Positions 4,540 to 61,075 of a DNA stretch of 64,000 nt are shown one piece after another. The DNA lies in the NCBI GenBank assembly GCA_964188305.1, contig OZ076886.1. One strand, written 5' to 3'. This stretch comes from Podarcis bocagei. Taxonomy: Eukaryota. The position numbers and the translations under genes were made by a program. The notes beneath the pieces are model-generated. The model searched no databases and was not told the origin of the DNA. It was given only the letters and a program-made list of their open reading frames with translations. How positions within the stretch are numbered: position 1 is the first letter of the stretch; each line of letters opens with the position of its first letter.

Positions 4540-5120
4540 GGCGCCGGACTCCGGGGAAGGCCGCAGCCGCAGCCGCGGACGGGGGGGGGTCCTTCACACC
4601 ATCGGGGGAGGGTCACTGGCCTGAGGGGGCGGCAGCGCCACGATTCCTTCCGGACTAGACAGGCGCCGCGCCGAGCACCGAGCGCGTCCAATGAGCCTTC
4701 CCAGGCTGACCAGAGGAGAGCCGAATTGTCGAACGCCGGCCGCCGCCGCCTTCCTCGGCTTGGCTCTTTCCATTCCCCAGCCTGCTACGTCCGTCCCCCT
4801 CTTTGCGAGCGCAGAGCGCGTCGCTCAAGGCAGGCCGCCCGGCGGAGTGCCAAGCTAACGATCAGCAGCCCGACTCTCACCTGGCTGGCGCCACCGGGAA
4901 AGGTGGGCAACGGACTGCGCTCTCTTCTCGCGCCTCTCACGGTCTCCATCGCGTGTCGCCTTCGCTGCCCTTGCAAGAGAGGTAAGGGATCCTACATGGG
5001 GTTACGAGGAGGCAAAAGACCCGTTGGACCCAGTAAAGCCCCCAGTAAAGTCACCACCATTCCAGAGGTTGCAAACGCGCTTCTTACTCCAGAGTTGGTC
5101 TTTCCTTCGGGAATGAGGCA
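3950..5120. promoter_or_regulatory. CpG island / promoter of WDR45B
   Basis: GC- and CpG-rich stretch spanning WDR45B exon 1 and its upstream region; boundaries estimated by eye. Confidence 0.85.
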
Positions 5121-12000: not shown

Positions 12001-15000
12001 TTGTAGCTCTTTTCTTTTTAGTTAATTCTTTACAGTGACATATTTTAGATGGCAGAATTGTGATTACCTGGGCCCCTCTGGAATAGGAACGAAATATGGT
12101 GCAGAATCTGCCTTGCCCAGATGTGTCCCTGTGGAGGTAAAATACAGTTAAAAATACATAGACCTTTCCATTCTGAATAACAGTGTTCTTGTTGAATTCT
12201 TATCTGGTCTTTCTGTTTTGCTCTCTTTATTAGTATTCTACCCTTTGCCTTAGTGGGGAAAGCAGTCCAGGTTAGGTATGTTAGGTATGTGAGGCTGAAA
12301 GACAGAGACTGGTCCAAGATCACCCAGTGAGCTTCATGGGTAACTGGGAATTTGAACCCTAGTCTTCCAGGTCTGAGTCCAGTACTTTAACCACTAAACC
12401 ACATGGACATCATGCATTTCAGCAGGATCATTCACTGAATCTACATGGGTGATTATGTACTCCTATAATATATTCACCAATCATTTAATATTACTTAGGC
12501 TTCTTGCACATATACAGAGAAACCCATTAATTTCACAATTGCTCCCTTGTCCTCAACTATAGCTCTTTAGTACAAAAGGCTAGTGGGTAGTATGACCTCT
12601 TCTTAACTGTTATAAGAATTAAATATTTGTAGTCAACTTTACAGTAAATATAAATACAAGCAGTATTACGTCCACTATGAACTGTTTTCAAAGCACAACG
12701 GCACAATCCAAACAGAGAACATAATACAAAGTTACCAGAGCTGCAGCTTTATTCGACGGCCATCCAGGAGTATTGTTGTCGTCTTGTAATCAATACCTAG
12801 GGATGGGAGGAGGTAAGGCAGAATTTTAAAATACTAAAAGCATGCCTATTTTTTTCACTCTAGAAAGCGACCAAGCGAGAAATGCCTATGTTAAATCACT
12901 TTAATAGTACCAACCGATTTTTGTTTTTTTAAAAAGTCCAATATATAGGGAAGGGCCAGTGGAAAAGCACCCACTTTGCATGCAGAAGCTGCTAGGGACA
13001 GCCATGCCCCCACCCCACCCCATTTTTTAAATGGGCACCAGATTTTTAGGGCAATGGGTGGTGAGTAGTATAGCATGTGTACTTTATTATTACTAAGATT
13101 ATCCACGAGGGCTTTAGTCAGACTGCTTTTGCAGTGTTCGTTGTACAGGCTTCAAACTATATGTGAAAAAACTTTTCAGAGGAGACAGAGAGAAATATTA
13201 CATGTTATGCACTGCACTTGATTATTTCTAGGGCTTATTAGAATTGTCCAAAATGTTGCATACTTCAGCTGCCTATTGGCTTGTGCCAATGACATCTCTG
13301 GATTAAGCAGTCGACTCCTACTTCCAATCATTAAAGCAGTTTTGCAATTGTAGATGAGGAATGCATATGTAGTTCTTTTAATAACAACAACAAAATAGAA
13401 CCAGGCTACCCACCAGTACCCTAGCTACACAATATGCTGCTGTTTCAGTATCGCCTTATTTCTTCTTCTTATTTCTTGGGTTTTTTTAATCTTTATTTTA
13501 GGAAACAACTTTTCTTCTTCTTCCCTGTAGCATTTTTTCCCCTCTCTCTCCCCCGATTCTGAACAAGATGACTACTCATTTTTATTCTGTCTGCATGCTT
13601 ATTTAGCGACTGAGTCAGAATTTCAGACCTAGGGCTTCTATAGCAGTAGAGTGGCCCTTTTTTTCCTCCTGTAAAGGTCAGGGGACAGAGAGGGATTATT
13701 AAGGGCTCATATGAGACACTTAAGTAAACTCTTGGGGCGGGCTGGGGTAATAATTGCATATTTAAAACTCATAGATTTTGATACACAGTCACTCAAAATG
13801 TAACCTTTTAATTTATCTGCTTGTTAAAATGTTTATAATTTATAGTACTTTGACTATCACATTTTTAAAACTACCTGTCCAGTGCTGAAGGACAAAATCT
13901 GGTTTCATGAATTCATGAAGACCCCAGAGACTACATAAAAGTATCTTCAGATTTGTATATTTTTTGCCACTGTAAATCATTAAAATCAATAAAATGCAAA
14001 AGCCAAGCCTTCCATTTTTCTTCTTACATTGTAATAGCTTATATAATTTTCTTTCCATATCACATTCTGATATTTATGCGTGATAAATGGCTTTGTACTT
14101 GGTTTCTCCTATTCTCACATTGTATAAATGTATCTCTCTTCAAACAGGCACAAATCCTCTGCAAAAAGTATCTAAGGTCCTGGGTAGATACTCTTTAAAA
14201 AAAGAGAAAATGTTGTTTGCTCATTTACATTTAACCTTGCTCCAAACAGGCTGCATTTAATTAAGTCTCTTAGTATGGATTAACAGTGCCTACGCAAGGG
14301 GCTAATCTGCATTAATTTATCTACATTAAATTAACACGTTGCATAAAACTACCATGTTTTCTGTTGGACACGGAGAGCTACAGGGCTTGGGTAGGAAGGA
14401 AGAAGATAGTGGCTGTCTTCAAGGCAGACAAATAGTTCCATATTCACATTTTTTCATTTTGGCAGGAGTAGCATTTAGGGAGGAAACTAAAGAGCACTGC
14501 AGCATCTTTTTCCAATACTAAGTAATCATTGTAGCCCTCCCCTAGTTGAAATTTTGGCATTGTTTCAGCCTCTGTTTAAGAAGCTAATCAAGTAATATCT
14601 GATTTTATTTCAATATCCATGGTAACAGATCCTCCATCCCTTGTTTTATAACAATCTAATAGTTTTACAGGTATCAGGCAAACATGCAGGTTATTAACTG
14701 AAATTATTTGGCTTACACTTAAGCATCAAAAACCAACTGTGTGGAAACATATCAGTTAATATCATTAAAAGTCAAGAAATTAAATGTAATTGTTTTGGCA
14801 AGTTTATTTTACTCTGCCAAGCGTCCAACCACAATCTGATTATTTTCAGGAACCATGGAGGGCAGTTCTTAATTCTGATAACCTGTTTCTACTACAGTTA
14901 TGTATGTCTATCAGATTTAAAGTGTATAATTACACAACCATTAAGCTTGTAGCATGCAAAGTTAAAAAAGAACAACATTTATTTCTGGCATCATACCCCG

Positions 15001-18000
15001 AACTAGTAGGGTTTAGTAGCCTAGTCCTTTGAGCTGTCAGTCACATCTCACAGTACTAGTTGCATGAAGGAATGGAATGAAGAAAGGAAGATGAAAAGGT
15101 GGCATTGAGGAATCAGTCCCTGGGACATTTAAAAATACCAAACATGCAAAAGGCCTTGCTAAGACTGAGGGAGGATGGGGATTGTTGTGATAATATGTCT
15201 GCCACCTCTCCTTGCTTGGCCTGTTCTTTGCAACTGACCAGAGAATTCCGCATAGTGCCAGATCCTTCCTCTCTGCTCACTTGGCCCACGCCCTCAGCCT
15301 CCCTGTTCCAGCATAAATATTTATATTTGCAAAAGGGGTGGGACCTCTGTTTCACATGAGTTCTGTGCAAATCAAAAAAGTTATAGGATCTCTACTAAAG
15401 CAACAGGACGCAAGTTGGTTTCAGTATTAAAATATGTACATACAAACTGATTATGTTGGCCCAGCTTAAATACATTTCGAGGACTGGGCTGTCCTGTAGC
15501 AGTTAAGGAAAGACAACATGTGAAGGGAGAGCAGCTAGACAACAGCATTCTGAACTAGCAAGGAATGACATTATACAAGGATCTCGAGATTTAACATTCA
15601 CCAGCTTGACCAAAGTACTACATAGTTGTTCTGCATTCCCTATTAGAACATTGTTAAATTTCAGCTTCTCTGCAAGATAGTATTGTTTAATCATTCACAT
15701 GCACTATGAAATGCTGTGGGTTTTGCCTTTTATGATGCGATTTCAAACAGTTTAGACTATGATCAAAAGTACACCAATACCACCGTCTTAAAAGTTTTAG
15801 TTCCCTGGAAACAACTCTAAATGATTTCAGTAAATCTAAGTACCAAATAAGTAACTTAATAAAATGGAAGGAGTAGGAGGTATATTACAGTCAGAAGAAG
15901 AGAGAGGAACGAATAACAGAAATGTTATTTATGTTGGTTGTTGTTCTTCATCACCTCCTGTTTCTTCCTGTTCTATTATTCCTCCTACTCCTTCAATTTT
16001 ATTGTATCTCTTTAGGCAGTATACACACTATACTTTTATAGTGCATTTTAAGCACATTCTTTTCCTCTAAGAATTCTGAGTGCTGAAGTTTGTTATTGGT
16101 TGCTATAAATTATAACTCTTTGGAGGTTAAACTACAGTACCCAGAATTCTTTGAGGGAGGGGAATGTGCTTTAAAGGTATAGTGTGGACACTGTTTTATT
16201 CTTCATTTTCGAACATTTGATGCTATTTCTATTTTTTCTTCACTTCAATGTACTGCTTATCTTCTTGATCCAATTCCCTCTCCCATTTTAGTAAATATTG
16301 ATTTGTTTTTCTCTTACCTATACCTTTCTTCAAGCATTGTTTCTTCTTGCTTTGAATATGCTAGTTTCCAACAGTCATAAAATTGTCCACATATATCCCC
16401 CCCCCCCCAGCTTTGGGAAGCTAGCATTTTTAAAGCAAGATGAGACAACGCCTGACGAAAACAAAAGAGGTAAATTGTGTGTGGTGGTGAGGGCTCAATA
16501 TTTACTAAAATTGATTTAGATCGGGGGGACTCAACTCCTCTTAATCTTATCTAAATGTGACAGTTTTCTTTTCATCTATTTTTTTATGGTTCTTTTCAGC
16601 TGGTTTTTGACTCAAACATTCTAGTGAGATTGCTCTGTGGAAAATCTAAAGTAGTATTATATTCTGAAATACACCAGCATTCTCTATATGTACTTTCATC
16701 AGCTTTGGGTACAGGTGATCATTATCTGCTTCTTTTACAGTTCTTTGGGACTGGACAGTACCATCCACTCCTGCTTTCACTCCTGTGTCATAAAAGCTTC
16801 GTTTAAGTCTTCCTCAATTATTATTCTAAGCCCTCTTCTCTTCACTCTTTATATGCTTTCTCTTAGCAATCCAATTTATTCTTGTGGCTTGCAATGTACC
16901 ACTGTTATACGAATGATTTCAAGCGCTATTGTTTGGTCCTTCCCTCCCCTTTACCAATACTTTATTTCAAATTGTCTGTATCTGCCTGGATGTCACTGTG
17001 CAAAAGATACTTTGCCTTCTCTTCCAAAGTTCCAATTGGCACCAACCTTCAGTCTTTTCTATAGTTAAAGGGTTTTGGTGTTATCTTTGATCTATTTCTA
17101 TTTCCGCTCACATATCTACCTAAGTTCTGCCAATTTTATTTCTATAAGATTTCTAAATTTGTTCTTAATATCAGCTAACATTCTTGTTCAGACCTACAGC
17201 CTACGTTGTGTTAACTACTAAAATGTCTTGTTCACTGATCTTCCTGTTTCTCAGTTTAAACCTATTATTTCTGTTTTCTCTTTTCTGCTTTCTTTCCTAA
17301 TTCTTCAGTCATTTTATACCTCTCTATATACCGGTATTTCCCTTCACAGGCTTCATGAAGTTTAAACTTCTTAAAGGTTAATAAAAGTTTAAACTTCGCA
17401 TAAAGCAATACAGGAAGGAATACTGATAGAAAAAAGGGGCAAGAATATGACTAGATATGAAGGTTACATCTGCTCATGTTTTTGCCCCTTTTTCTATCTG
17501 TTGCTTTCCATTTTTCTCTTTGGTCCTTCTGTTAATAAAGCACTGATGTTTTTAATTAAATCTCTACTATATGGTTATATTTCTTATCCCCATGCTTTCT
17601 TTCTTATGTCTAGCACTATTTTCCCTTTACATTTTTGACCAGGCCCTTCATCTCATGAAGAAACAGTTTTAAAAACTTCTGTCTTGATGTGCTATTTGGA
17701 TTTTTTTTTTTGTTTCTTCCTTACTCCTAAAGTTCATTATTGTAGTCTTTTAACACTTTGCTTCTTTCAGATAGTGCAGCTCCACTTCCCTTCCCTTTTG
17801 TTTCTTCATAGCTTCTGAACCTGTAAACAGGGACTTATATCTGTACAATGGCCTAGGAGCATATGTTAATAATTTTATAACTAAAAAATTACAAAGTAAA
17901 TTTACTTTTGATAACTATGACTCTAAGTGCCATCAGAAAGGGAAGGAAGAACTGGACTTTTCAACAGTTGTTTTGAATAGACACAAAACGTTTAATTTCA

Positions 18001-21000: not shown

Positions 21001-23817
21001 TCCTGCTGCTACTGAAGTCAGTGACAAGTCTGCCATTCGATGGTGCAGCCATCGTCAAAAATGAACTCATTAAATTTTTGATGTGGAATCATATTCTGAG
21101 GAAGTTTTTATTTTGCTTTGGATCAAATCAAATTAAAGAGATGCATAGGTTCAGATTTTCAGCTGCATCTGACATGGTCTGAGCCTCTCATTTGTCAGGT
21201 TCAATGAAGGAATGAACTATAAATAAATGTTCCAGTGTTAATGCCAAAAATACTCATCCTATCCATATCAGTTCTTCAGAAACACTTGGTAGTGCTATTA
21301 TAATCTTGTGCTATACTTATTCTTGTCTTTTCCTTTTTAAAAAAACATAATTCAGACCCTTATCCACCTTTATTACTTTTAGGCGGATGTCCAGATGTCT
21401 TGCACTGTTCTAAATATTTTGCATATCAGCAGGCTAAAAAGATTCATCATCTTGATTAAAATACATGTGAATTCTTCACTCTCTGTTTATTAGGGTAATA
21501 CCATTCGGAGCCTATGCTTAACCTCCTGTGAGAGCCAGCTCTACTATTAGGCAGAGACAGCTGCCTTAGACAGCTATGGGGTGTCATGAAAGGGTAGTAA
21601 ATCAAAAGTTATTTAATTTGCTGTATTTTTACTGCTGAGAAGGGGAGAGACACTTGTGTGATTTTCTGCCTCATGTGCAAAATAGATTGACTACCTCTGA
21701 GTACTAGACACCTTGTCTTGGCAGTGGGTGAGTTGGAAGCATTTGCTCTTCCACCTCAGACAGAAAAATGGGCCAGCCAGTCACCATGTTTGCAGCAAGA
21801 AGATATACAGCCATACTTTATGTTACATCCGCTTCATGTTACGTCCTGCGGTGACCCGGAAGTACCGGAAAGGGTTACTTCCGGGTTTCGCCGCTTGCGC
21901 AGAAACACAAAATGACGTCATGCGCAGAAGCGGCAAATCGCAACCTGCGCGTGCACAGACACGCCGCTGCGGGTTGCGCTCTTTTCATGTTGTGAATGGG
22001 CCTCTGGAACAGATCCTGTTCGCAACCAGAGGTACCACTGTATGCTACATTGGGGTAATGTACATTGTTTTCCTTGGTCCTTACTCTAGAAACAAGCTCC
22101 TGATGGAAGAAATGATCACATGACCATTTCCCTGTCAGGTGCTGATAAAGTAATGCATGTTTCTCAGTGTCTACCACGGAAACCATGTGAGCTACCAGTG
22201 GAGGTAGAGATAGCATTCCAGATGCTGAGAAAGGAAGGTGCATAGCTGTACATGCATGGGGGCAGTGTGAGAATGAATGAATGAGTGCGTTGGTGGATGT
22301 AAGGTAGAGTTTAAAAGGGAGGTCCACCGCGGATGTGTGTGAATGAGGTATCCCCAGCCACTTTTGGCTTCAGACCTATCCACTCAGAGGCGGAGCTAGC
22401 TGTTCCGGCACCCGGAGCGGCACACATGCGTCCCAGGGGGGTGCAGCCACGGTGAGCATCCCAGGGGGGTGGAATGGCGATGCCACCTCCCACGCCAATG
22501 ACACCTAGGGTGAATCGCACCCACTGCACCCCTCTTCCTCCAACAGTGTATCTACTGCCAGTAAGCAGGCAGCCTGAGACTACTGTTCCCTGAGGAAATG
22601 TGGTCCTCACCTTTTTAAAAAAGGTTTCCCAATTTGCTGCATATGGTCATATAGTTTATACTTTTAAAACAGCAGACAGCTACCTGCAAGAACTAAAAAA
22701 AGTGATTAATTTTTAAAAAAATGAAAATCTCCACCAATACTCAGCATTCCCGATGGTCACTCTAAGAAAACTGAAAGATGCACAAGACCTGTATAGCAAA
22801 CCTTTCCAGTCTCTATTTAACAAGAGGTATTCTTTGTAACTTCTCAAAGCAGTTGTACAGCACAAGCTTGCTGGCCTGGCACAGAACACAAACCCCAAAT
22901 ACAAACTTACACTGTTCCTCTTCTTCAACGATATATGCACAGCAAAATGTTAATCTCCTCCACTTAGTGTGCATCCTTTAATTTGGTGTGAATGTGAGCA
23001 TCACTGTCATGATTTCAAGTGGAGGCAGCAGTTCATTTTAGCACTAGGATTAAATGACTTTAAGAGGCCCAAATAAAATTGTTTGGCTGTATCCTTGTAT
23101 GTGCTTTGGTTCTTTTTGGGTTGTGGTCTCCTCTGCCTGTAGCTCTGCTGAGTCTACAGAACACTCAGTTTCACCAAGCTAGTCTGACCATGGCCATTAC
23201 ATCTACATGACAACATAAACTTTACTGACTCACGAGGAAATTTTACAGTGCATTTGTGCTCACACCTTGTAATTCAGTTGACAGGAATGGGCAACCTTTT
23301 AACGTTAAGGGAGGTGTGTGAAACCTGATTATTTGCAATAACCTAAAGGTGGATTGTGGGAAGCATAATCAAAGCAGATGACGACAACACGTCAGCCAGT
23401 AGCCGATGGGCTTTCCTGCCACTGCACAGTTTCTAAAGAAGGCTACCAGAGAGCTCAAGGCAGCTGGGAAGGCAGATGCCCTGTCATGGAAGCCCTGCCC
23501 TATAACTGCCAAGGTGTGGGAGGTGTCTGTGGTGACTCAGTAATCGCGAAAGGCAGCCCTGCACAAACACTACCTTCCTCCGTGCAGTCTACAGGTGTAA
23601 GAAAGAGCTACCTGCCGCCAAGTAACCGAGGCTGGCCTAGATCTTGGCCGCAGGTACAACCCCGTTGCTGCTTACCCATATTGTACCCGTAAGGCGACTC
23701 AGTGGCTCCATCCTCCAGGCTGGCTAGTATCTCTCCTTTGCCCACGTCGCTGTCGCCCACCAGCAGGAATTTCAGCAAGAAGTCATAAGCTTTCACAGGG
23801 CTGCCCACGTGGTTCAT
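9036..23817 (-). CDS. RAB40B: Ras-related protein Rab-40B (SOCS-box Rab GTPase), 6 coding exons, 278 aa
   Basis: Exons 23817-23676, 12796-12736, 12128-12068, 11742-11665, 10775-10553, 9307-9036 (142+61+61+78+223+272=837 nt), all GT-AG. Contains P-loop [21 protein letters not shown] box ([13 protein letters not shown]...[11 protein letters not shown]) and C-terminal CKIS prenylation motif. Confidence 0.97.
12290..12403 (-). mobile_element. tRNA-derived MIR/Squam-like SINE fragment
   Basis: Minus strand begins gtggtttagtggttaaagtactggactcagac...gggttcaaattccc, with Pol III A/B-box-like elements. Confidence 0.6.
16018..16193. mobile_element. Palindromic MITE
   Basis: Imperfect inverted arms cagtatacacactatac...agcacattc...aagaattctg / cagaattctt...gaatgtgcttt...gtatagtgtggacactg. 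Confidence 0.6.
16700..17340 (+). mobile_element. Ancient L2-like LINE remnant in RAB40B intron 1
   Basis: Degenerate RT segment ([11 protein letters not shown]...I.S.GL, YHCY.ND resembling YHCYADD). Confidence 0.55.
18745..18824 (+). mobile_element. CR1 3' terminus
   Basis: ggactagatgacc...cccttccaactcc...attctctgattctatgat tail. Confidence 0.8.
21808..22040. mobile_element. Tigger-like MITE family B
   Basis: TA-flanked, ends cagccatact...gaggtaccactg; internal CCGGAAGT and TGACGTCA. Confidence 0.85.
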
Positions 23818-24960: not shown

Positions 24961-25210
24961 GGGTGACGACTGATGGAACTGCAGCGTACAGAACGAAATG
25001 TCAGAGCAGGTCTCAGAGGCAGTAGAGTATATGATTCTGCTAACAAACTATTCTAGAATGACATTCATAAGGACAAATGTAGAATCAGATCAACCATGAC
25101 TTACCGTAAATTCTGCCTCCAATAGTGGCAAACCATATGCCCTTCACCTGGCAGGATTGTTGGATGGATTTACACCTCACAAGTTTAAAGTTTAAAGGAA
25201 GCAGTTGTTA

Positions 25211-25216
25211 TTTATT
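25211..25216 (-). terminator. Candidate polyadenylation signal of the 893-aa ORF
   Basis: TTTATT on plus, about 430 nt downstream of the stop codon and just before the RAB40B CpG island. Confidence 0.6.
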
Positions 25217-25645
25217 AATACCCTGTTATTGTGCACATGCTGTACAGTACATACATAATTACATGGATAACACAGGTAGCAACCTGCTTCCAAGATGCTT
25301 AAATCTAAAACAGAAAGTAAGGAAACTGAGGACTGAGAGAGAGAAATGTGTGGGCAAATGTTGCATGTACTTAAAACTGGGTTGCAGTTGGGAATGTATA
25401 TTAAAAGGATAAATCAAAGGCCACATGGAAGATAAGATCTAAGAAAGATTAGAAGGAATGGACAACTGGCATATGTATTCACCCTATGTTGTGGGGGCAG
25501 CAAGGAAGAATGGGCATGTAATTGAAAGAAGCATGAGACCTTTGGCTGGATGAGATTGTTGGAGTTGGAGAAGCAGAGGTTATAGGTGGAGATTTAAGGA
25601 AAAGCCAGGGTCAAGAGCTTGGTGTGGTCAAAGTAGATTTTCAAG

Positions 25646-25960
25646 TTAAGAACAGGGCATCTCCTCCTGTTGACTCTCTTTTGGGAACCCTGGCATCTCC
25701 TCATCTTGGTTATCTTTTGGGGACCCTGCCATCTCCTCCTGTTGACTCTCTTTCGGGAACACTGGCATCTCTTCTTGTTGGCTCTCTCTCCTGGACCCTG
25801 GACCCTCTGCCTGTTGGCTCTCTCTCCGGGACCCGGGACCCTCTGCCTGTTGGCTCTCTCTCCGGGACCCGGGACCCTCTGCCTGTTGGCTCTCTCTCCA
25901 GGACCCGGGACCCTCTGCCTGCTGGCTCTCTCTCCGGGACCCGGGACCCTCTGGTTGTTG
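25646..25960 (-). repeat. Coding minisatellite, 36-bp unit (QQAEGPGSRRES x5, then QQEEMPxFPKES-type x3.7)
   Basis: Directly visible 36-nt periodicity running up to the stop codon. Confidence 0.95.
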
Positions 25961-28327
25961 CCCACCTGTTTGCAACTCTGTATCTTGGGGCTCTTGGGCC
26001 TCTGGTTGGGGAGGCTGCTGTACTTCTGCTTCCTCACCCCCAGCAGGGGCTGGTTCTTGTTTTTCTTCCTCCTCTACCTTAGCTTCACCCTGGATTTCAT
26101 CACTCTCTGGGGGCTGATCCTCTTTAGCCTTTGGTTGATCACCTAGTGGAAGAGGAGCTTCGCCATATCGAGGGCCATATATTTTTGTTAGGTAGTCTAT
26201 GAACAAACTCTCGCTGGTCTGTTGACTTGCAGATCTGACTTCTACACCAGTTTTTCTCTCCAGGTAGAATGTTTCCTCTTCAGGAAGTTTCTGATGGTCC
26301 TCTGGCTGCTCTTGCTCCTTTTCAAGTTGTGCTGGCTTGTTCTCATCTGGCTGTTGTGGCTGTTGGCTGCCTCTCCGAGATTCCTGTCCAGTTAGCTGTT
26401 GGCTTCCATGTTGAGATCCTTGAGCATCTGGTTGCTGGCTTTCATCCATCAATTCCTGCCCTTCTGGTTGTTGACTCTCCTGCTGTGACTTCTTGCCTTC
26501 TACCTGTTGACTACCACGTCTGGATCCCTGTCCTTCTGCCTGTTGATTACTATGCCAGGATTCATCCTGGTTTTTGAGAGAGGTTCTACTGCTGGGTAAA
26601 GAGTCAGGAGGAAAGTCTGTCTGTTCATTTTTATGCACCAGTTCTTTATGTCTAAAAACGCTTATTTTGCTATCAGTCTGCAGTGTTTTGTCTACAGACA
26701 TTTTATTAGAAGCTTTTCTCTTTCCTTCCACCTGTGATTCCTTTCCTTCCACCTCTTGGTCACCTTGCTGGGATTCCTGAACCTCTGCCACTTCTACTGG
26801 TTTAGCTACTGGTTTAGCTTCTGAATCTTTGGGAGCAGCAATCACTTCTTCGGCAGTTTTCACTTTTTCTCCAGCATCACTATCGGCATCTGGTTGGCGA
26901 GAAAGACGAAGAACTTCTGCCAGAGGCTTTCGCTCCCAGATTTGACTTGTCTGCTGACCTGTGCATTTCAATAACTTCCCTGTTTTTTTGCTGATCCAAG
27001 ACCCATCCTCTGTCGGTTGCTGCTGCTTTGACTCTTGGCTGCTGACACGAGCTACTGCAGGTGGTTTTCCTGCTGCTTTCTCTACACTTTTCGGGTAACC
27101 AAGAGGTTGCAGAATTTCAGAGAGTGGCTTGGGCTCCCAAATTCTACTGGTCTGCTGGCTTTCGCATTTCATAACTTTTCCTGTCCTTTGGCTAATCCAT
27201 GTCATGTCCTCCTTGGCTTCAACTTCATTTATAGGTTGTGTTGTGGAAGGTCTATGGCTTTGTAGGACCTGGTGGTTAATGGATTGATGACTGCCTCGGC
27301 GAGATTCATGTCCTGGGACCTGCTGATTGTGTCGGGATTCCTGGCCTACAACTGGTTGAGTGCTTCGGCGGGATTCATGTCCTGGAAGCTGTTGGCTATG
27401 CCGGGATTCCTGGCCCGTGAGCTGTTGACTTCCGCGGTGGGATTCATGCCCTGGGAGCTTCTGGCTATGCCGGGATTCCTGGCCCGTGAGCTGTTGACTT
27501 CCGCGGTGGGATTCATGTCCTGGAAGCTGTTGGCTATGCCGGGATTCCTGGCCCGTGAGCTGTTGACTTCCGCGGTGGGATTCATGCCCTGGGAGCTTCT
27601 GGCTATGCCGGGATTCCTGGCCCGTGAGCTGTTGACTTCCGCGGTGGGATTCATGTCCTGGAAGCTGTTGGCTATGCCGGGATTCCTGGCCCGTGAGCTG
27701 TTGACTTCCGCGGTGGGATTCATGCCCTGGGAGCTTGTGGCTATGCCGGGATTCCTGGCCCGTGAGCTGTTGACTTCCGCGGTGGGATTCATGCCCTGGG
27801 AGCTTCTGGCTATGCTGGGATTCCTGGCCTATTAAAGGTTGACTCTGACTGCCTCGGCGGGATTCATGGCCCGGGAGGTGCTGGCTATGCTGGCTGCCAC
27901 GATGGGAGTCATGACCAAGTTCCTTTTTGAGAGATGACATGCTAGCACTTGCGCTGCCAGGAGGCAAGTCAGGCTGCTGGTTTTCCTCTATCAGTTCCTT
28001 ATGCTGAATAATGCTGATTTTGCTTTCAGGTCGCTCTACCTCACCTTTATCAGAACTTGTTGTCTTTGGGACATCTTGGTCCATTGCTAGGCCATTATCT
28101 CCACTTTCCTGGTGTGGTGTCAACTCTTCGATTTCATCATTATGTTTCTCCTCCTCACTATCTTTGATTTCATCACTTTGTTTCTTTTCCTCATTGATTT
28201 CATGTGCATCTTCTTCATTAATTTCAACAATTTCCTCCTTGATTCCATCATTATCTCCCTGTTCTTCAGTATCTAGCCGACCTTCATTTGCGGCACTGCT
28301 CTCAAGAGTTTCCTCAGGCTCATCCAT
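25646..28327 (-). CDS. Uncharacterised intronless 893-aa E/Q/S-rich tandem-repeat protein (FSCB-like features)
   Basis: 2682-nt uninterrupted ORF in DNA where chance ORFs outside CpG islands stay near or below 150 aa. Start context AGAATGG (A-3, G+4) with an in-frame TAG just upstream; frame-preserving 69-bp and 36-bp repeats; downstream AATAAA at 25211-25216. No transposon protein motifs. Confidence 0.85.
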   Translation of the reverse strand: MDEPEETLESSAANEGRLDTEEQGDNDGIKEEIVEINEEDAHEINEEKKQSDEIKDSEEEKHNDEIEELTPHQESGDNGLAMDQDVPKTTSSDKGEVERPESKISIIQHKELIEENQQPDLPPGSASASMSSLKKELGHDSHRGSQHSQHLPGHESRRGSQSQPLIGQESQHSQKLPGHESHRGSQQLTGQESRHSHKLPGHESHRGSQQLTGQESRHSQQLPGHESHRGSQQLTGQESRHSQKLPGHESHRGSQQLTGQESRHSQQLPGHESHRGSQQLTGQESRHSQKLPGHESHRGSQQLTGQESRHSQQLPGHESRRSTQPVVGQESRHNQQVPGHESRRGSHQSINHQVLQSHRPSTTQPINEVEAKEDMTWISQRTGKVMKCESQQTSRIWEPKPLSEILQPLGYPKSVEKAAGKPPAVARVSSQESKQQQPTEDGSWISKKTGKLLKCTGQQTSQIWERKPLAEVLRLSRQPDADSDAGEKVKTAEEVIAAPKDSEAKPVAKPVEVAEVQESQQGDQEVEGKESQVEGKRKASNKMSVDKTLQTDSKISVFRHKELVHKNEQTDFPPDSLPSSRTSLKNQDESWHSNQQAEGQGSRRGSQQVEGKKSQQESQQPEGQELMDESQQPDAQGSQHGSQQLTGQESRRGSQQPQQPDENKPAQLEKEQEQPEDHQKLPEEETFYLERKTGVEVRSASQQTSESLFIDYLTKIYGPRYGEAPLPLGDQPKAKEDQPPESDEIQGEAKVEEEEKQEPAPAGGEEAEVQQPPQPEAQEPQDTELQTGGQQPEGPGSRRESQQAEGPGSWRESQQAEGPGSRRESQQAEGPGSRRESQQAEGPGSRRESQQEEMPVFPKESQQEEMAGSPKDNQDEEMPGFPKESQQEEMPCS
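27290..27915 (-). repeat. Coding minisatellite, 69-bp unit (LPGHESHRGSQQLTGQESRHSQ[K/Q])
   Basis: Six near-identical units at 27389-27802 plus degenerate flanking units; units alternate between K and Q types. Confidence 0.95.
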
Positions 28328-28507
28328 TCTTTTTCCAGATGCAATATGGCTATGCTATGTTGTTCAGTCTCCAGAGCAGGACCTTCTGGAGTTTCCCAAG
28401 GTGTCTGTTAACTACTCCAGTAGTATGCTCTTTTCCTTCCTACTTCTGTTCTTTATTCAGGGCTGCTCTTTACAAAAACTATCCTGAGGCCCAGATGGAT
28501 TAATGGC

Positions 28508-28651
28508 TCTTATATTTAAAAGCCCTGCGACTTAGTGCTTCACTCTGAGTGTGGCTGCCTTCCTCCAATGTGTTCCTTCCTTTCCGTTGCTAATAACTAC
28601 CAGGTTGTTCTAGAAGCTTCAGAACTTGGGTTCCATATATCTATGACATCA
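28508..28651 (-). promoter_or_regulatory. Candidate non-CpG promoter of the 893-aa ORF
   Basis: TATA-like TTTAAATATAAGA (28520-28508, minus), CCAAT 28565-28569, MYB-like CAACGG 28589-28584, CRE-like TGACATCA 28644-28651. These are short motifs and individually weak. Confidence 0.35.
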
Positions 28652-29068
28652 GTTATTATTCTGCTCCATCTGTCCTTTTATTTAACAACAAGCAGGACCC
28701 GAAGAGGGCTTCAGATAGGACCATACACTTGGAAAGTTTGTAAATGGAATTGGAGCCATCATCCTGAGGTGACAACAAGTGCAATTTAATGAGAAAGCTC
28801 TTGTATTTTAATCCCGAAGACCTAAGCTTCTAGATCCTTAGATCATGGTCAGTTTTCTCATTTGTAAAAATGGGAATAGTATATCATTGTTGTTTGAATT
28901 GTTTTCATATGTGATTTTTAAAATTACTAAATCACTTGGAGTTGTTCTATATCATTACCTCATTTCATGATTAATACACATGCACAATAATCACTAGCAA
29001 TTTCTGCTGTTTCCCACCATATTCTGTTACATTGTGGTAGTATGCATGTTGGGAACCTGTGCTACGTA

Positions 29069-32489: not shown

Positions 32490-33350
32490 AAAATACGGCC
32501 TCCCCACACGACACGCGTGAAGCAGAAGAAAAGGGGAGGAAAAGGTCACTGCTCCCGTTTCCCTCAAAGGCAGTGACCCGCCCTTTCGCAGGCGCCGCCC
32601 TGCCAAGAGGCGCGCTCTCTCCCTTGGTGGGCGCTTGCTACCATCCCGCCATTTCAGCGGGCGGCCAAGAGCACGGAGGCCTCCGGGGGGGCGGGGCCTG
32701 TGGTTCGGCGGGAGGGGCGAGCTGCCTCTTAGCGGCCGGCCTCTTTCTCCCCGGGTCTCTGCGGCGCGATGGAGGAAGCTCTGCGGCGCGAGCTGGGTAC
32801 TTCGGCGCTCCGGCCTACGGGCCACTCGGGGGGCGGCTGCATTAGCCACGGCGAGAGTTACCACACCGACCACGGGCGCGTCTTCGTGAAAAGCAACTCC
32901 CGCGCAGAGGTGGGGGGAAAGAACCGGAGGGGAAAAGCACCGGCGGGTAGTACTCCCGGTGGGGAAGGCGGGTGTGGGCGATGGGGAGTGAAGTGCAAAG
33001 GGTCGAATAAAAGCCGTGCTGCAAGAAGGCGAATTGCTGTTTACTCCCCTTTGCTGAATAGCACTCCCATGTTGTTTGCTTTTTTTTTGCAAAGTGGCCT
33101 GACATAGGCGCAAATGCACAGAGCGAGCTGGTACCCCGTCACAGTGACGCGACGACGAGGCTGTGTCAATGGTTTACTTCTCCTGCCCTGCAGGCAGCTG
33201 TTTAAAAGCAATGGTGTCGCGGCCGAAAGAAAGAAAGAAAGTGCCTGCGGACGAGTTGTGGTGCCCCTGGCTGTGTGTTCGTTGGCGGACTTGCTAAAGT
33301 CGGAGCTGGAGAGGGGCTTTCTCGCCATCCATCTCGTGGGCCCCACCACT
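32490..33350. promoter_or_regulatory. CpG island / promoter of FN3KRP
   Basis: CpG-rich region with GC boxes (GGGGCGGGGC near 32688) around exon 1. Confidence 0.85.
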
Positions 33351-36300
33351 GCAGCGAGGTGGAGGTTTACTTTTGAGGAAGTGTCTTAACACAGGCACCC
33401 CCCAAACTAGGCCCTCCAGATGGTTTGGGACTACAATTCCCATCACCCCTGACCACTGGTCCTGTTAGCTAGGGATGATGGGAGTTGTAGTCCCAAAACA
33501 TCTGGAGGGCTGAGTTTGGGGATGCCTGGTCTAACAGGACATCTTGGCAGGGCTTTAATCTGAGCCAGGGCCTTAGGAGCCCATTTAAAAAGCAATGGTT
33601 TTGTACACACGGTGAAACGTGTGAACTAGGAAATGAGAGTACCCGTGATCACATGCAGGGTGCCTTGTTTCCGCTAGGAAACTAACTTGCATAAGTAACA
33701 GGATTTGTGCTAGGCATTCTTTTTATGCTGTCTCTCCTCTTAGAAAATGGCCACGTGAGGCATGATTGGCAGAGGTTTTGATAGCTAGTGTTAACGAAGG
33801 AATGAGCAGACATGGCTTGGCAGTTTGCTACATAATAGCTGCTGTGTTGTGAATTGTTCTCTGATTTAGTGCTGAAAGGGCAGATGTGCCCAGAAAGGGG
33901 CAAATGTGCTGTGTATGCAGGCTCCTAAGATTATTATTTTTCTTTTAAATCTGACATATGCTGGAAAGTTTTGTATGTGAAAGTGTTTACAGAAGTCCCC
34001 ACCCGCTATTTTATCTGACAGGCAAGGAGAATGTTTGATGGAGAAATGGCAAGTTTAACAGCTATCCTGCAAACGAAGACTGTGAAAGTTCCAAAACCTA
34101 TAAAAGTTATCGATCTCCCGGCTGGTGGTAATCTGTTTGTGATGGAGCATTTGGATATGAGGGGTTTGAACAGGTAATCTCTGTCTCATTTTCTTGCTGT
34201 GATTTACTTGCATATTCGAGGAGGAAAATCAGTATCATGTAAACCACCTTGAAGAAAACAAGTTAATACAAATTAATCATATTTACTATTCATTTCTGCA
34301 GTGATGTGAACTAAAGTTGGATAACATTTTGGCCCATAAGTGTTTTATGAAGACTTATAAAGAGGAGAAAGAGGACCCAAGTGTTCATTCAAAAATGTTA
34401 AATTTATTATTGCTTTGCTTCAGTCTGAGCTGCAACCAGCATGCGGCCATGTATTCTAAATTGGGGTTGGGGTATCTCCTTCAGCCTGACAGCTGTATTC
34501 CATTGTACTCAACCTTCCAGAGGTTGAATGCCAGTGGTGACCGGGGACAGAAGCAAAAGTGGGTAGAACCATGGATATGACGTTCAGGTTTGTGGCGTAG
34601 GCTATGTGCTAGCCATGCAAAACTCAGACCATTTCTCACCTCTCCATTTTTCCAGGTGGACAAGGGGCCTTATCACAGTTCAAGGACTTTGCAGCCAGGC
34701 AAAAGCACATTAGAGTGTGGAGCAGGCCCCGTCATGGTTGTGGACTGGGAAGGTGCATGACAGGAGAGTCCAAATAGGGCCAAACAGAAAAGCCTGGAGA
34801 GCTGCGTTCTGCTCTAAATAATGAAGCTATAACTTTGTCTCAGATGGGAGCATAGCTGTCAACATTTCCCCTTTTTTTTAAGGGAAATTCCCTTATTCTG
34901 AATAGGATTCCTCGCAAGAAAAGGGAAAAGTTGACAACTATGGATTGGAGGGTAAATTACCCTGATCTTACTGAACTTCCTTTATGAACTTTGGCACAGA
35001 CAACATTTTCCAAGTTACTGTGTTTGCTCTCTAATATACAGAATTTGGTGAGATTTCATTGTTAATATATTAATTAATTATGCATGCATTTACTTGTGTA
35101 TAGGATCTTATTGACTTTGAATGCATAGATTTATGTTCAAAGTGTGCCATTATAATTTTCTTGGGAACTTCCCAGTAGGTGATTCTGTTGGACTGCTGGT
35201 AACAGCTTGACAGTCTTTTAATCCTTTATTTTGGAATGGAAACTCGGAGTTGATGCAATAAATCAATTTTTATTGTAATCAAACAAATCAGTTTGGTTAG
35301 AAATTTATCAGTTTGGATATAGAACCCATATTACTTCAAAGACACACACTCAAAGCCAAATTGCACCTAAATCCTCCAGATCAGCTTGTCATCACGGGAC
35401 ATCTCACTGGACCAAAATTCCTCCTTTATTGCTGGCTGAGTTTCCAACAGGTCAAAAGTTGGATGCAACACATACTACTTCTTTCAAGAACTCCAAACCT
35501 GGAGTTTTCATAGTCACTTGCCCAAAGTCCAAGGTAACTTAATAGGCCCACTGTATGGTAAACAACACCATATTTGGGCTTCCAGCACATGCAACACTGA
35601 GGCTTAGTGTTATAAGGGATTATAGTGTCTTGAATGCATGCAGTGAATGTGTTGAGGTGCTGGATGAGACAACCTTCTTGCTGTCCTTTAGAGATAGGTA
35701 CCTCTTAAATTGGGTTTGGATAAAACATGTGCCCTTCCAGATGCTGTTTCATGGTGAAACCATCAAATTTTTGTTGCTGTGTAAACGTATCTTTTTTACA
35801 CCACTAGACATGCAGAAAAACTTGGAACACAGTTGGCTGATCTTCATCTTCACAATCAAAAACTTGGGGAGAAGCTGAAGAAAGATGCAAACACTGTTGG
35901 TAAAGTACCCAGCTGTCCATGACCTGCCAATTCCCCCAGCTGTTTTGCTCTAACTCTGTAGCAGAACCCCTAGAAACTCGTCATTGCATGCATAAAGAGA
36001 TATTAAAATGCCAACAAGCTGGGGCAAGTCAGCTCTCCCTGAAAATTGCTCCCCATGAAGTTGTTACAGTAAGTGTCACACTTTTAAACAATAAAAATAG
36101 GTGCTGCTACTGCATACCCTTGAGTACCCCTTGGGGGGAAAAGCACTGGGCAGCTGCATTTGGCCCCCAGGCTTGAGGTTTCTCACCCCTGATTCAGATC
36201 ATGATTTTGTCTCCAGTAGTAGCAACTGCATACTTCTCAGAATCTTACTTAAGCTGCTGGGTGACCTTGGGCCAGTCACACTTCTCTGAAGTCTCTCAGC

Positions 36301-38512
36301 CTCACTCACCTCACAGAGTGTTTGTTGTGGGGGAGGAAGGGAAAGGAGAATGTGAGCCGCTTTGAGACTCCTAAAGGGGAGTGAAAGGCGGGATATCAAA
36401 TCCAAACTCTTCTTCTTCTTCTTCTTCTTCTTGTAGCTGAAAACTGAAAACAGAGAAACTTAGTAAGAGCTATGTGTTTTAAAGGTTTTTAAGATTTGGG
36501 GGAGCAACCTTTATGGTACTCATGCTAGTAGCAGCTGAGACCTGCGGGTATAGGGTGGTATATAAATTAAATAATAATAATAATAAGAATAGGTTTTTAA
36601 ATGATAGCATAATAAAGTTTCCTATTTTTAGAAAGTTACTCTGTTCAGAACAGACAGTCACCACTTCTCTCTGTTTTAATAGGTAAAGGTGAAGAACAAA
36701 CTGGGGTCCAGTTTGTGGATAAATTCGGGTTCCACACTGTTACATGTTGTGGCTATCTTCCACAGGTATGATCTGGACTAATGGCTCTTCCACACTGAGG
36801 AAACCATTTAGTTTTTTGTTCACTTCTAGTTTTCCTTTAATTGGGAAAGGCTGAATATGTTTGAATAGGAGGACTTTTAAATATTAATTCAGAGAACTGT
36901 AACTAGGTATGAAGATTCCAGGGCTACTGTCATAACTTTTGGTATTAGTAACCAATCTTCACCTTTCAGCTAACACAACAGTAGATGTTGGTGTTTACAG
37001 CTGCACCAGTGAATGCCCCTGAAAACAACTGCTGTGCCTTATGCAGCGTCAAGAGTTTGTGTTAGCAGTAGCTAATAGCTAATTAACACAGCAAGAGTCT
37101 TCTTTTTATATATAAGTGTATAATTTCATATTTTTGTAAAGTGTGTAAAAGTCTGAAAGTCTCATCCACAAACCATTTAAATCTATTTCAGCACCAGAGA
37201 AGTAAATAGGTCTAGATGAGCCTCCATACAAATGGTATGGCATAATTGGTTTATGAATTGCTTGTCTTATTTCCATTTTTCATCGGAGGGCCTTTTTCAA
37301 GGCATCTTCTCATAGAGACAAACTGGCTGAATTTTTGACTACTTGCTTGTTTAGGTGAATGACTGGCAACAGGATTGGGTGACTTTCTTTGCCAGGCAAC
37401 GAATTCAACCTCAGATGGACATGATTGAGAAGAACTCTGGAGACAGGGAAGCAAGAGAACTTTGGGCAAAACTCCAGGTAACGATGTCCCATGGGGACCA
37501 TAGAGGGAATTGTTACATTCGTATATGTGGGGTTGTTCTTATTGTGTAGAGTTTCTGAAATACCTACACTCTCTGTGCAAATGTCATGATCCTCTTCTCC
37601 CCAGAACCTAATAAACTAGTGGAAAAGAGTCCTCTCACCCACATCTCTCTGAGGTCTCTACTAATTGTGGAAGAGCAATACCATAGCAGCATAAAAGAGC
37701 CCTCACGTGAAAAAGACCAAATAATATTTGAAAGGAGAGGAGGAGCTATTTGAATACACAATAGTACTTTTTAAAAACAATTAAAGACTAAAATAAGCAT
37801 TCTGTTCCTTGAAATAAACACTGATATGTGGCTATATAATGTGTGAAGGAATGTCTGAGAATTTTTAAAAATTTAAATACAAAAGGCTTAAAAATCTTCG
37901 TTAAGCCTTTTGATAAAGTAGTACCTCAGATATCTGGTTTAAATGCTAACAAGACTCTGGAAAATCTTGTTACTTAATTTTTGGATGTGATGTGCCCCCT
38001 ACTGTTCATGTTACTTTAATTCGAATCGTATGCACCTAGGTTGTCCACACCCTAGGTTTGTCTCTTTTTCTCTATACAGTATCAGGATTTGATGTGTCTA
38101 CTGTTTAAAGCCACAAATTAGAACACCCAGTCCCCTTACAATTAACTTTAGCAACTCCTGCTTTCTTTTTCAGCTGAAGATGCCCAGTTTGTTTGGCGAT
38201 ATGGAAATAGTTCCTGCTCTTCTACATGGGGATCTGTGGGGAGGAAATGTAGCTGAAGATGACTCTGGGCCAGTTATCTTTGACCCTGCAGCTTTCTATG
38301 GTCACTCTGAGTATGAGTTAGCAATTGCTGGGATGTTTGGTGGCTTCAGTGGTTCATTTTATTCTGCCTACCACAGCAAAATCCCCAAAGCTCCAGGGTT
38401 TGATAAACGGCTCAAGCTGTACCAGTTATTTCACTATATGAACCATTGGAATCATTTTGGCGGAGGGTACAGAGGTTCATCTATCAATATAATGAGGAAT
38501 TTGGTCAAGTGA
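32769..38512 (+). CDS. FN3KRP: Ketosamine-3-kinase (fructosamine-3-kinase-related protein), 6 exons, 309 aa
   Basis: Exons 32769-32909, 34022-34173, 35808-35899, 36683-36765, 37355-37477, 38174-38512 (930 nt), all GT-AG. P-loop GHSGGGCIS, catalytic HGDLWGGN; the C-terminus [14 protein letters not shown] resembles FN3KRP more than FN3K. Confidence 0.95.
33392..33528. mobile_element. Palindromic hAT MITE family C in FN3KRP intron 1
   Basis: 137-bp hairpin element nearly identical to 62796-62932; TSD gtct(t)aaca. Confidence 0.9.
34851..34942. mobile_element. Short hAT-like MITE
   Basis: TIRs CATAGCTGTCAAC / GTTGACAACTATG; 8-bp TSD gatgggag / gattggag. Confidence 0.8.
36250..36432 (+). mobile_element. 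5'-truncated squamate SINE with (TTC)n tail
   Basis: gctgggtgaccttgggccagtcac...gagccgctttgagactcct...caaatccaaactc followed by a TTC microsatellite. Confidence 0.7.
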
Positions 38513-41505: not shown

Positions 41506-42702
41506 GACTAGACTGTACCACTGAAATATTTCACAAGCAGATGCCATTGAATTTTGAAGTGTGTCTTTTGAATTGAACAGGCCTTCTGTGCTGTTATTAA
41601 AATGTTAGAGCATCTGCAGCAGCCCAACCATAGCCTTCATCTGCTCCAGCTGCAACAAAATATGTATCTCCCGTATCTGTCTCTACAGGTACAGGAGACC
41701 CTATAAACGTTCCAACAGTTTGACTTTAACCTGCAAATACGTAACTGTTGTCTCCTGATACAGATGGATGCCATCCACCCACAAACGCCCTTCCCACTTT
41801 GAGCTATGACTAAATGGGCAGCTGTTCCCAAATGAGTTATCAGAATCTTGCTATGTAAATTGGGAGTTATCCCCATTAATAGGGTCTGTATAGAGGTCTT
41901 TTGTACTGGTGAGGGTGCCGAGTTTGGAAATCAATAAATAACAAAATTTGTTTACATAAACACTGTTCCACACGGGATAGTAACCACCTTTCATATTGCA
42001 AATCCGCCAGCAAGGGGTTTAGCTATATTGGGGTTGTATTGTTTTCACAACTTTTCCTTAACTTAATTTACGAAGCAGGTTTTGACATTAGGAAATACAG
42101 CTTCAGTATTTCCGAGGTGTGAAGAAACTTTTTCCTTCGTAAAATGGAAGACAAAATAGGGAGAAAAAACTTGATTATGTGAAGTGGGACATGTCCCACT
42201 CATACGGAGAGAAATATATTGGACTGCTACAGTTTCCGGCTTTATACCAAACACCCCATTGGCCATAATTCTCAATACGCGCAGGATGCAATGTGCACCC
42301 CGGAAGTTAGAGCGGAAATAGTTAAAATGCAGACCGGAAACGCAATAAGGATCGCGGTGTTGCGCCAGCGACTAGGAGCAAAATCCAATCATCTCGATGG
42401 TTTCTTGTCTGTCAGGATATACGAAGTCTCTATGGCCAAGGCTCCGTCACATGAAACGAGGAAATCGGGTTACAGTTAGTTTCCTACTGGCCGGGCTGCC
42501 TCACATGGTGCGAGGTTCTCTTTCTGGCTATTGGCTGCTGGGAGTTAGAACGACGCTCGCGAGCGGTGGCCGAGGTCCGGATTGGCCCGCGAGCGGCCAA
42601 GTGGGCGGGGAGTCTGGGCAGCGTGCGCTGGGCGGCGGAGTGGAGTGGAGCTAGCCGTCAGTTGGCTGCGTCTCCCGAGCAGCGGCGGAGCGTGGTGGCT
42701 GG

Positions 42703-61075
<18,373 letters not shown>

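Follow-up and report, generated by a model that had tools for sequence, protein, structure and literature searches.

An intact, intronless gene between Rab40-type and FN3K-type genes of Podarcis bocagei is a truncated member of a sauropsid gene family

In a stretch of Podarcis bocagei DNA of 64,000 nucleotides (nt; contig OZ076886.1 of assembly GCA_964188305.1, hereafter the window, with 0 Ns), an intact single-exon open reading frame (ORF) of 893 codons lies on the minus strand between a Rab40-type and an FN3K-type gene. We found that this ORF belongs to a family of genes with relatives in squamates, turtles, crocodilians and birds, and that it has lost the C-terminal part common to its orthologues. 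The gene is real and, judging from purifying selection and from the conservation of its promoter, probably functional. At a probability of roughly 0.6, we read it as a functional lacertid member of one squamate clade (clade A) of an intronless family restricted to sauropsids, coding for a truncated scaffold protein that would be regulated by phosphorylation, with testis as the best guess for its site of expression. The coding region is organized as follows:

25646-28327, minus strand: coding sequence, 893 amino acids (aa) and stop, single exon
27950-28036, minus strand: first type-2 module, aa 98-126, SKISIIQHKEL...NQQPD, found in all family members as LQTDSKxSxFxxKEL..DQxQQTD
27288-27880, minus strand: 23-residue tandem repeats (69 bp x 7.9) of the type GHES(H/R)RGSQQLTGQESRHSQxLP, with (R/H)RGS sites
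27101-27208, minus strand: signature module 1, aa 374-409, TWISQRTGKVMKCESQQTSRIWEPKPLSEIL, an AlphaFold2 beta-hairpin (block mean predicted local distance difference test, pLDDT, 87)
26900-27007, minus strand: signature module 2, aa 441-476
26600-26701, minus strand: second type-2 module, aa 543-576, VDKTLQTDSKISVFRHKELVHKNEQTDFPPDS
26162-26272, minus strand: signature module 3 followed by the hydrophobic segment SESLFIDYLTKIYG, aa 686-722
25656-25960, minus strand: 12-residue tandem repeats (36 bp) of the type PGSRRESQQAEG; the ORF terminates within this array

The ORF runs from an ATG at 28327 to a TAA at 25646-25648. Its start lies in the context aaagaATGg, with A at -3 and G at +4 (a strong Kozak), and is preceded by an in-frame TAG at -30, with no other ATG within 200 nt on its 5′ side. 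Past the stop, the sole AATAAA in about 745 nt (25645 down to 24901) is found at 25216-25211. By our estimate, the chance of an ORF this long in 64 kb is below 1e-10. The original prediction had described a complete, intronless gene for an acidic disordered protein at this place, with a TATA-like box, strong Kozak, upstream in-frame stop and AATAAA; the ORF and the flanking exons bore this out, and all four signals were found.

The same prediction had called the gene an orphan, and this did not hold. A first protein search already gave orthologues in Zootoca, Rhineura and Pogona, together with weaker relatives in geckos, agamids, Podarcis, turtles and birds. The family shares module variants of two kinds, TWISxRTGKxMKCxSQQTSxxWExKxLxEIL and QQTYSxxSLExGxWxNRxTGKxLxSxSQQT. 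We aligned 64 modules (alignment A1), in which T, G and T were invariant and W, Q and Q reached 90% or more, and searched the resulting profile exhaustively against 1.84 billion cluster representatives with a cut-off of E ≤ 0.001. Among the 37 matches, every one with a named source was from a squamate, turtle, crocodilian or bird, and none of these named matches was a mammal, amphibian or fish protein; several others were Logan contigs with no source name, and a few of the lowest-scoring matches seem unrelated. Searching with the non-repetitive modules, as the original prediction had proposed, recovered relatives in these four groups. The Zootoca orthologue was recovered by a family profile at E = 3e-78.

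Family membership was defined by at least two signature modules of the form W-x3-TGK-x6-QQT with near-invariant W, TG and QQT, and the window ORF has three. It also carries the acidic family N-terminus MD(E/D)xEP, the type-2 module LQTDSKxSxFxxKEL..QTD and ESRRGSQQ-type sites. The motifs SQQTSRIW, DKTLQTD and NEQTDF, flagged earlier for their resemblance to mammalian FSCB (fibrous sheath CABYR-binding protein), turned out to be conserved modules of this family. In a maximum-likelihood tree, the squamate proteins formed four well-supported clades, A to D, sister to a single-copy outgroup clade of turtle, alligator and crane. Clade A consists of the window, Zootoca, Rhineura and Pogona proteins, clade B of ‘MDDDPEP’ proteins, clade C of giant ‘futsch-like’ proteins and clade D of a further group; the family therefore comprises three squamate clades beside that of the window gene. 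The window protein is sister to that of Zootoca, with terminal branches of 0.064 and 0.08, respectively.

The closest relative is Zootoca vivipara XP_034996733.1, to which RefSeq has automatically given the name ‘fibrous sheath CABYR-binding protein’. Over residues 1-814, the two proteins are colinear (100% query cover), with an identity of 76% when repeat-length gaps are included and 88% over conserved columns. N-terminus, modules, both repeat types and the SESLFIDYLTKIYG segment are alike; this hydrophobic segment is identical in Zootoca and almost so in Pogona. The two proteins differ in repeat copy numbers and in their ends, since the Zootoca protein, of 1134 aa, has a 320-residue C-terminus with two more modules. 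Members of clades B (e.g. Podarcis muralis LOC114590935), C and D resemble the window gene in their MD-acidic N-terminus, type-2 and W-x3-TGK...QQT modules, ESRRGSQQ-type sites and single exon, but form separate clades and have kept the C-terminal modules. Single-exon genes were found for Podarcis clade C, Pogona clade B, Phrynocephalus clade D, Calidris and Grus. In Rhineura floridana, the locus (L001:10001-14158, CM057606.1) is one unbroken ORF of 1385 codons. The RefSeq model for it (XP_061468815.1, ‘filaggrin-like’, 1015 aa) removes some 370 repeat codons by splicing, and this ‘intron’ is probably an annotation artefact.

Two further loci deserve mention as members of the family. In Podarcis lilfordi (OX395126.1, about 133.58 Mb; L003:10001-17168), the annotated 1046-aa clade-C protein and the next gene, of 811 aa, look like a single giant gene of about 2,380 codons, split by a frame change within repeats; the second ORF (13152-17168) holds the C-terminal modules of the family. 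In Sphaerodactylus townsendi, a protein of 400 aa (P0036) carries two NQTS-variant modules and a C-terminal repeat of EEAPEAPEEAPEAAPEA..., which we take to be reminiscent of the proline/glutamate/alanine repeats of mammalian FSCB.

The automatic names given to family members conflict: FSCB for Zootoca, Alligator and Limosa, filaggrin-like for Rhineura, MED12-like for Pogona and futsch-like for others. As equally close members are named discordantly, these names look like low-complexity best hits. The window protein has an isoelectric point of 5.1 and contains 14% E, 14% Q, 12% S and 7% P, with just 19% hydrophobic residues. Its acidic N-terminus speaks against a signal peptide, in support of the absence noted earlier. 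The ORF contains two tandem arrays in frame, with 7.9 copies of a 69-bp unit and 5.3 copies of a 36-bp unit; both periods are multiples of 3. There are 8 RRxS and 27 RxS kinase-type sites, with ESRRGSQQ as a hallmark of the family. The 69-bp repeats have been homogenised at 27288-27829 (copies 90% identical), and most units there read SHRGS instead of the SRRGS of the family.

No Pfam model was matched above threshold by the ORF or by seven relatives (cut-off E ≤ 1), the sub-threshold matches TPR_25 and IRK_N being noise. In the AlphaFold2 model of the module alignment, the only structured elements were a short helix at SEIL and a beta-hairpin formed around W-I-S-x-R-T-G-K-x-M-K (predicted template modelling score, pTM, 0.26), and the C-terminal module variant was modelled with still lower confidence (pTM range 0.22-0.26). 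A hairpin and a short helix alone are consistent with disorder plus a binding motif. Two known module types were considered and discarded. For a WW domain, a three-stranded sheet with two tryptophans is required, and we obtained no Pfam WW match and only a two-stranded hairpin (pTM 0.22-0.26). For an AKAP-type amphipathic helix, SESLFIDYLTKIYG and LSxRLSEAMLL were checked by eye against the RII-binding consensus, and neither fits cleanly.

The QT motifs of the modules raise another reading, in which the protein would be a multivalent client of the dynein light chain LC8. The ORF has six xQT motifs, its relatives as many as 17, and every one of them lies in a conserved module predicted to be extended or beta. 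In LC8 motifs, the residue preceding Q is usually T, V, I or S. Here the triplet is QQT, LQT or EQT, the canonical TQT anchor occurring 0 times in 11/11 family members counted (the ORF and 10 relatives), and the invariant W-x3-TGK hairpin has no counterpart in LC8 motifs. We consider an LC8 client highly improbable.

The name filaggrin-like of the Rhineura orthologue, in turn, would suggest an epidermal, cornification-type structural protein whose S/G/H/Q/R-rich repeats serve as transglutaminase substrate or histidine-rich matrix. The 23-residue repeats, rich in G, H, S, Q and R, do resemble filaggrin/hornerin repeats in composition, and filaggrin/S100-fused-type proteins in general also have long arrays of repeats in which S, G, H, Q and R abound. 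But the window protein has no S100/EF-hand head and no other Pfam domain (E ≤ 1), is acidic overall, and is flanked by Rab40 and FN3K-type genes instead of lying in the epidermal differentiation complex. The conserved parts are moreover the hairpin-QQT modules, outside the repeats. An epidermal role thus appears very unlikely.

We then compared the sequences 5′ to the ORF with those of other family loci. The following features were found:

28328-28925, minus strand: promoter and 5′ untranslated region (UTR) block homologous to Rhineura clade A (28328-28778: 82.6% identity over 460 nt; 28760-28925: 67%)
28644-28651, minus strand: octamer TGATGTCA, like a cAMP-response element (CRE) with one mismatch (motif match), first half of a bipartite promoter element
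28608-28620, minus strand: GAAGCTTCTAGAA, second half of the element, a perfect three-unit inverted repeat of the heat-shock-element type (motif match)
28511-28518, minus strand: TATA-like box TAAATATA, 191 nt 5′ of the ATG; transcription would start about 30 nt further downstream

The upstream block is 82.6% identical to Rhineura while synonymous sites of the coding sequence differ at 51%. Within it, the bipartite element consists of TGATGTCATAGA (GATGTCAYAGA type), a spacer of 8-22 nt and then GAAGCTTCTAGAA, the window copy lying at 28651-28608. The first half, (T)GATGTCAYAGA, also precedes the second by 10-25 nt in Rhineura A, Podarcis C and Chelydra, and does so in variant form in Alligator and Pogona B. 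Six loci (those of the window, of Chelydra and Alligator, and of Rhineura A, Podarcis C and Pogona B) each contain the 11-mer AGCTTCTAGAA a single time, on the strand of the gene and 290-440 nt 5′ of the ATG. By chance, 0.12 occurrences would be expected in the 247 kb searched. A regulatory module common to paralogues and to lizards, turtle and alligator argues strongly that the family consists of regulated genes with a common expression programme. The promoter of the ORF is CpG-poor, unlike the CpG-island promoters of both flanking genes.

Selection on the coding sequence was examined by the ratio of nonsynonymous to synonymous substitution rates (dN/dS), a computation proposed with the original prediction. 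Against the Rhineura ORF, dN/dS was 0.33 overall (synonymous rate, dS, 0.85) and 0.23 across the module region, indicating purifying selection; the value averages over the whole lineage, including the time before truncation as well as since. Together with 83% promoter identity to Rhineura, a dN/dS of 0.33 makes the gene look functional.

The 3′ end of the gene contrasts with that of its orthologues. The Zootoca, Rhineura and Pogona proteins extend 280-320 residues past the 12-residue repeats (Zootoca 320), and this extension contains two QQTYSxxSLExGxWxNRxTGK modules and a conserved LSxRLSEA segment, all missing from the window ORF. The C-terminal region left no trace in any frame across the 64-kb window, even by permissive tBLASTn. 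The window copy is thus a truncated family member. Two features mark the transition:

25646-25657, minus strand: breakpoint; similarity to the orthologues ends after ...EEMP in the repeat array and is followed by two foreign codons (C, S) and TAA
25211-25645, minus strand: AT-rich unique 3′ UTR, 435 nt up to the sole AATAAA; the Rab40 CpG island starts just beyond

The 3′ end is a structural breakpoint, produced by deletion, rearrangement or partial duplication, and not a point nonsense mutation. The 3′ UTR resembles neither the orthologous loci nor any other part of the window. It was also considered as a short interspersed element (SINE) or other transposable element, and this was rejected as no second copy was found in the window or in loci L001-L008; it may have a MIR-like tail. 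A 10-bp direct repeat, GATTGTTGGA, at 25155-25164 and 25554-25563, brackets 389 bp of the 3′ UTR including the AATAAA. It could be the target-site duplication of an insertion; about 0.4 such repeats are expected in the stretch by chance.

Owing to the missing C-terminus, a serious rival to a functional gene is a decaying remnant, i.e. an in-situ truncated gene or partial segmental duplicate that is weakly or not transcribed and has no function. The clean loss of about 320 C-terminal residues at a structural breakpoint, with a foreign 3′ end after it, is what such a copy would look like. Its product is without record in any indexed annotation, its repeats have changed from RRGS to HRGS, and relocation would be compatible with the lack of Rab40 and FN3K exons in the 10 kb to either side of the orthologous Rhineura locus. 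On the other hand, the 2.7-kb ORF has remained intact although it is Q/E-rich and hence stop-prone, the window branch is no longer than that of Zootoca, the promoter retains all conserved elements, and dN/dS is well below 1, though averaged over the whole lineage. On balance we regard a functionless remnant as unlikely.

How the family relates to mammalian FSCB was a central point of the original prediction, which saw in the ORF a candidate FSCB-like sperm protein. That view agrees with the names some pipelines give (Zootoca, Alligator, Limosa), but similarity to mammalian FSCB itself was not detected. In searches of limited sensitivity, mammalian FSCB appeared neither in the exhaustive module-profile search (E ≤ 0.001) nor in word-seeded region and full-length profile searches (E ≤ 10). 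From literature and general knowledge, the two share an intronless gene, an acidic low-complexity protein and PKA-type sites; all three features are present in the window gene, and they do not discriminate, being common to many unrelated proteins. The N-termini of mammalian FSCB proteins presumably carry several xQQT/LQT motifs. The chromosomal neighbourhoods differ, Rab40/FN3K-type genes here and 14q21.2 for human FSCB (PMC4945165). An FSCB-like sperm scaffold is plausible as a mode of action and unproven as a family assignment.

In its stronger form, this view would make the sauropsid family a true, very diverged FSCB homologue and the window gene a sperm fibrous-sheath protein that binds CABYR/ropporin-type partners and is phosphorylated by PKA. 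Mammalian FSCB is a CABYR-associated protein of the fibrous sheath, co-precipitates with CABYR and is found in late spermatids (PMC3398308, PMC4945165), and three independent annotations, for Zootoca, Alligator and Limosa, call family members by its name. The TATA-containing promoter with its CRE-like site would be a further trait in common, beside gene structure, acidic composition and basophilic kinase sites. The nearest ESM-Atlas cluster by features is also named FSCB (cosine 0.77), a lead only, and that cluster may itself be sauropsid. Against homology stand the absence of any mammalian protein at E ≤ 0.001 among the 1.84 billion representatives or at E ≤ 10 in the two other searches, the other names (filaggrin-like, MED12-like, futsch-like) borne by equally close members, and the different location of the human gene (14q21.2, PMC4945165). 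We see this homology as possible, and hold it tentatively at best. A more far-reaching version, in which the hairpin-QQT family would be the long-missed sauropsid counterpart of FSCB with four squamate paralogues, and the window copy a relocated or rearranged one that kept its germ-cell promoter and lost the C-terminal docking modules, seems doubtful to us. If true, the window copy would be a natural ‘headless’ variant of the scaffold, with a possible influence on how the sperm fibrous sheath assembles.

We thus favour a functional, truncated clade-A gene of a sauropsid-only family, and picture its working as follows. The family proteins would be long, acidic and intrinsically disordered, with tandem arrays of sites for basophilic kinases (PKA-type RRxS). 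Several copies of a docking module of about 35 residues, made of a short beta-hairpin W-x3-TGK-x3, QQT and usually W-E-x-K-x-L-x-E-I-L, may fold upon binding a structured partner, so that each protein would act as a multivalent scaffold regulated by phosphorylation. Transcription would proceed from the TATA-containing, CpG-poor and tissue-restricted promoter common to the family, with its CRE-like octamer and heat-shock-type element. Our best guess is that, like mammalian FSCB, the gene is active in post-meiotic male germ cells: a TATA-containing, CpG-poor promoter with a CRE-like site, intronless structure, fast evolution and variable repeat numbers would all fit a gene of this type. In the window copy, a rearrangement within the 36-bp repeat array would have deleted the C-terminal ~320 residues, and the gene would have acquired the new 3′ UTR that lies immediately 5′ of the Rab40 promoter. 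We infer disorder-based scaffold function, kinase regulation, testis expression and any relation to FSCB from these features. One Logan contig, from a clade-D relative (L009), lacks a poly(A) tail.

Several observations weigh against the picture we favour. The C-terminal third that is missing here is conserved in clades A to D, and the copy could be crippled. RRGS is retained in many repeat units of Zootoca and Rhineura and is mostly HRGS in the window, a shift that may reflect recent concerted evolution and weakens the PKA consensus. Zootoca provided the only annotated clade-A orthologue in lacertids among the matches, and an exact-product look-up gave no record of the window protein in the assembly or in the Logan gene index. 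The module-profile, region and full-length profile searches detected no mammalian homologue of the family. The testis/FSCB part draws on promoter type, intronless structure, composition and automatic names. Finally, the six other family loci checked (L001-L006, among them that of Rhineura clade A) are free of Rab40 and FN3K exons over 10 kb on each side.

The neighbouring genes of the window were identified by their exons:

23677-23817, minus strand: Rab40-type exon 1 (RAB40B or RAB40C), downstream neighbour on the same strand, with a CpG island
32769-32909, plus strand: FN3K-type exon 1 (FN3KRP or FN3K), divergent upstream neighbour with a CpG island; its last exon lies at 38174-38512

This FN3K-type gene (32769-38512) is the only one in the window, and no other paralogue of the family was found there. 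More CpG-island-like peaks lie at 4000-5000, 42000-43000 and 56000-57000 (GC 0.56-0.65, CpG observed/expected 0.7-1.0), and an Rfam scan of 24.0-29.5 kb gave matches at chance level only. The 10-kb flanks of eight relatives contained no neighbouring gene, save for an SOS-type gene (RhoGEF-PH-RasGEF) lying divergently upstream of the Podarcis lilfordi clade-C locus L003. In this species, a 137-Mb chromosome carries the clade B, C and D genes, each some 3.4 Mb away from one end, with that of clade C beside the SOS-type gene. In every chromosome-scale assembly seen (L001, L003, L006, L007 and L008), family genes sit 1.4-9 Mb from one end of a large chromosome: 3.4 Mb for Rhineura A and Podarcis C, 3.8 Mb for Pogona B, 1.4 Mb for Grus and 9 Mb for Phrynocephalus D. 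This hints at a single conserved subtelomeric cluster, possibly without the Rab40-FN3K interval.

The present result is a solid annotation rather than a surprising mechanism. The ‘orphan’ is replaced by a concrete family that databases label in four ways (FSCB, filaggrin-like, MED12-like and futsch-like), and the signature module, the phylogeny and a promoter element shared by lizards, turtle and alligator make this family easy to annotate and test. The truncation and the shared promoter element are two new results. As a natural deletion variant, the truncated copy offers a way of asking what the C-terminal modules do. Should the family turn out to be sperm-specific, its proteins would represent a new, fast-evolving part of the flagellum in reptile and bird sperm, and a possible connection to mammalian FSCB.

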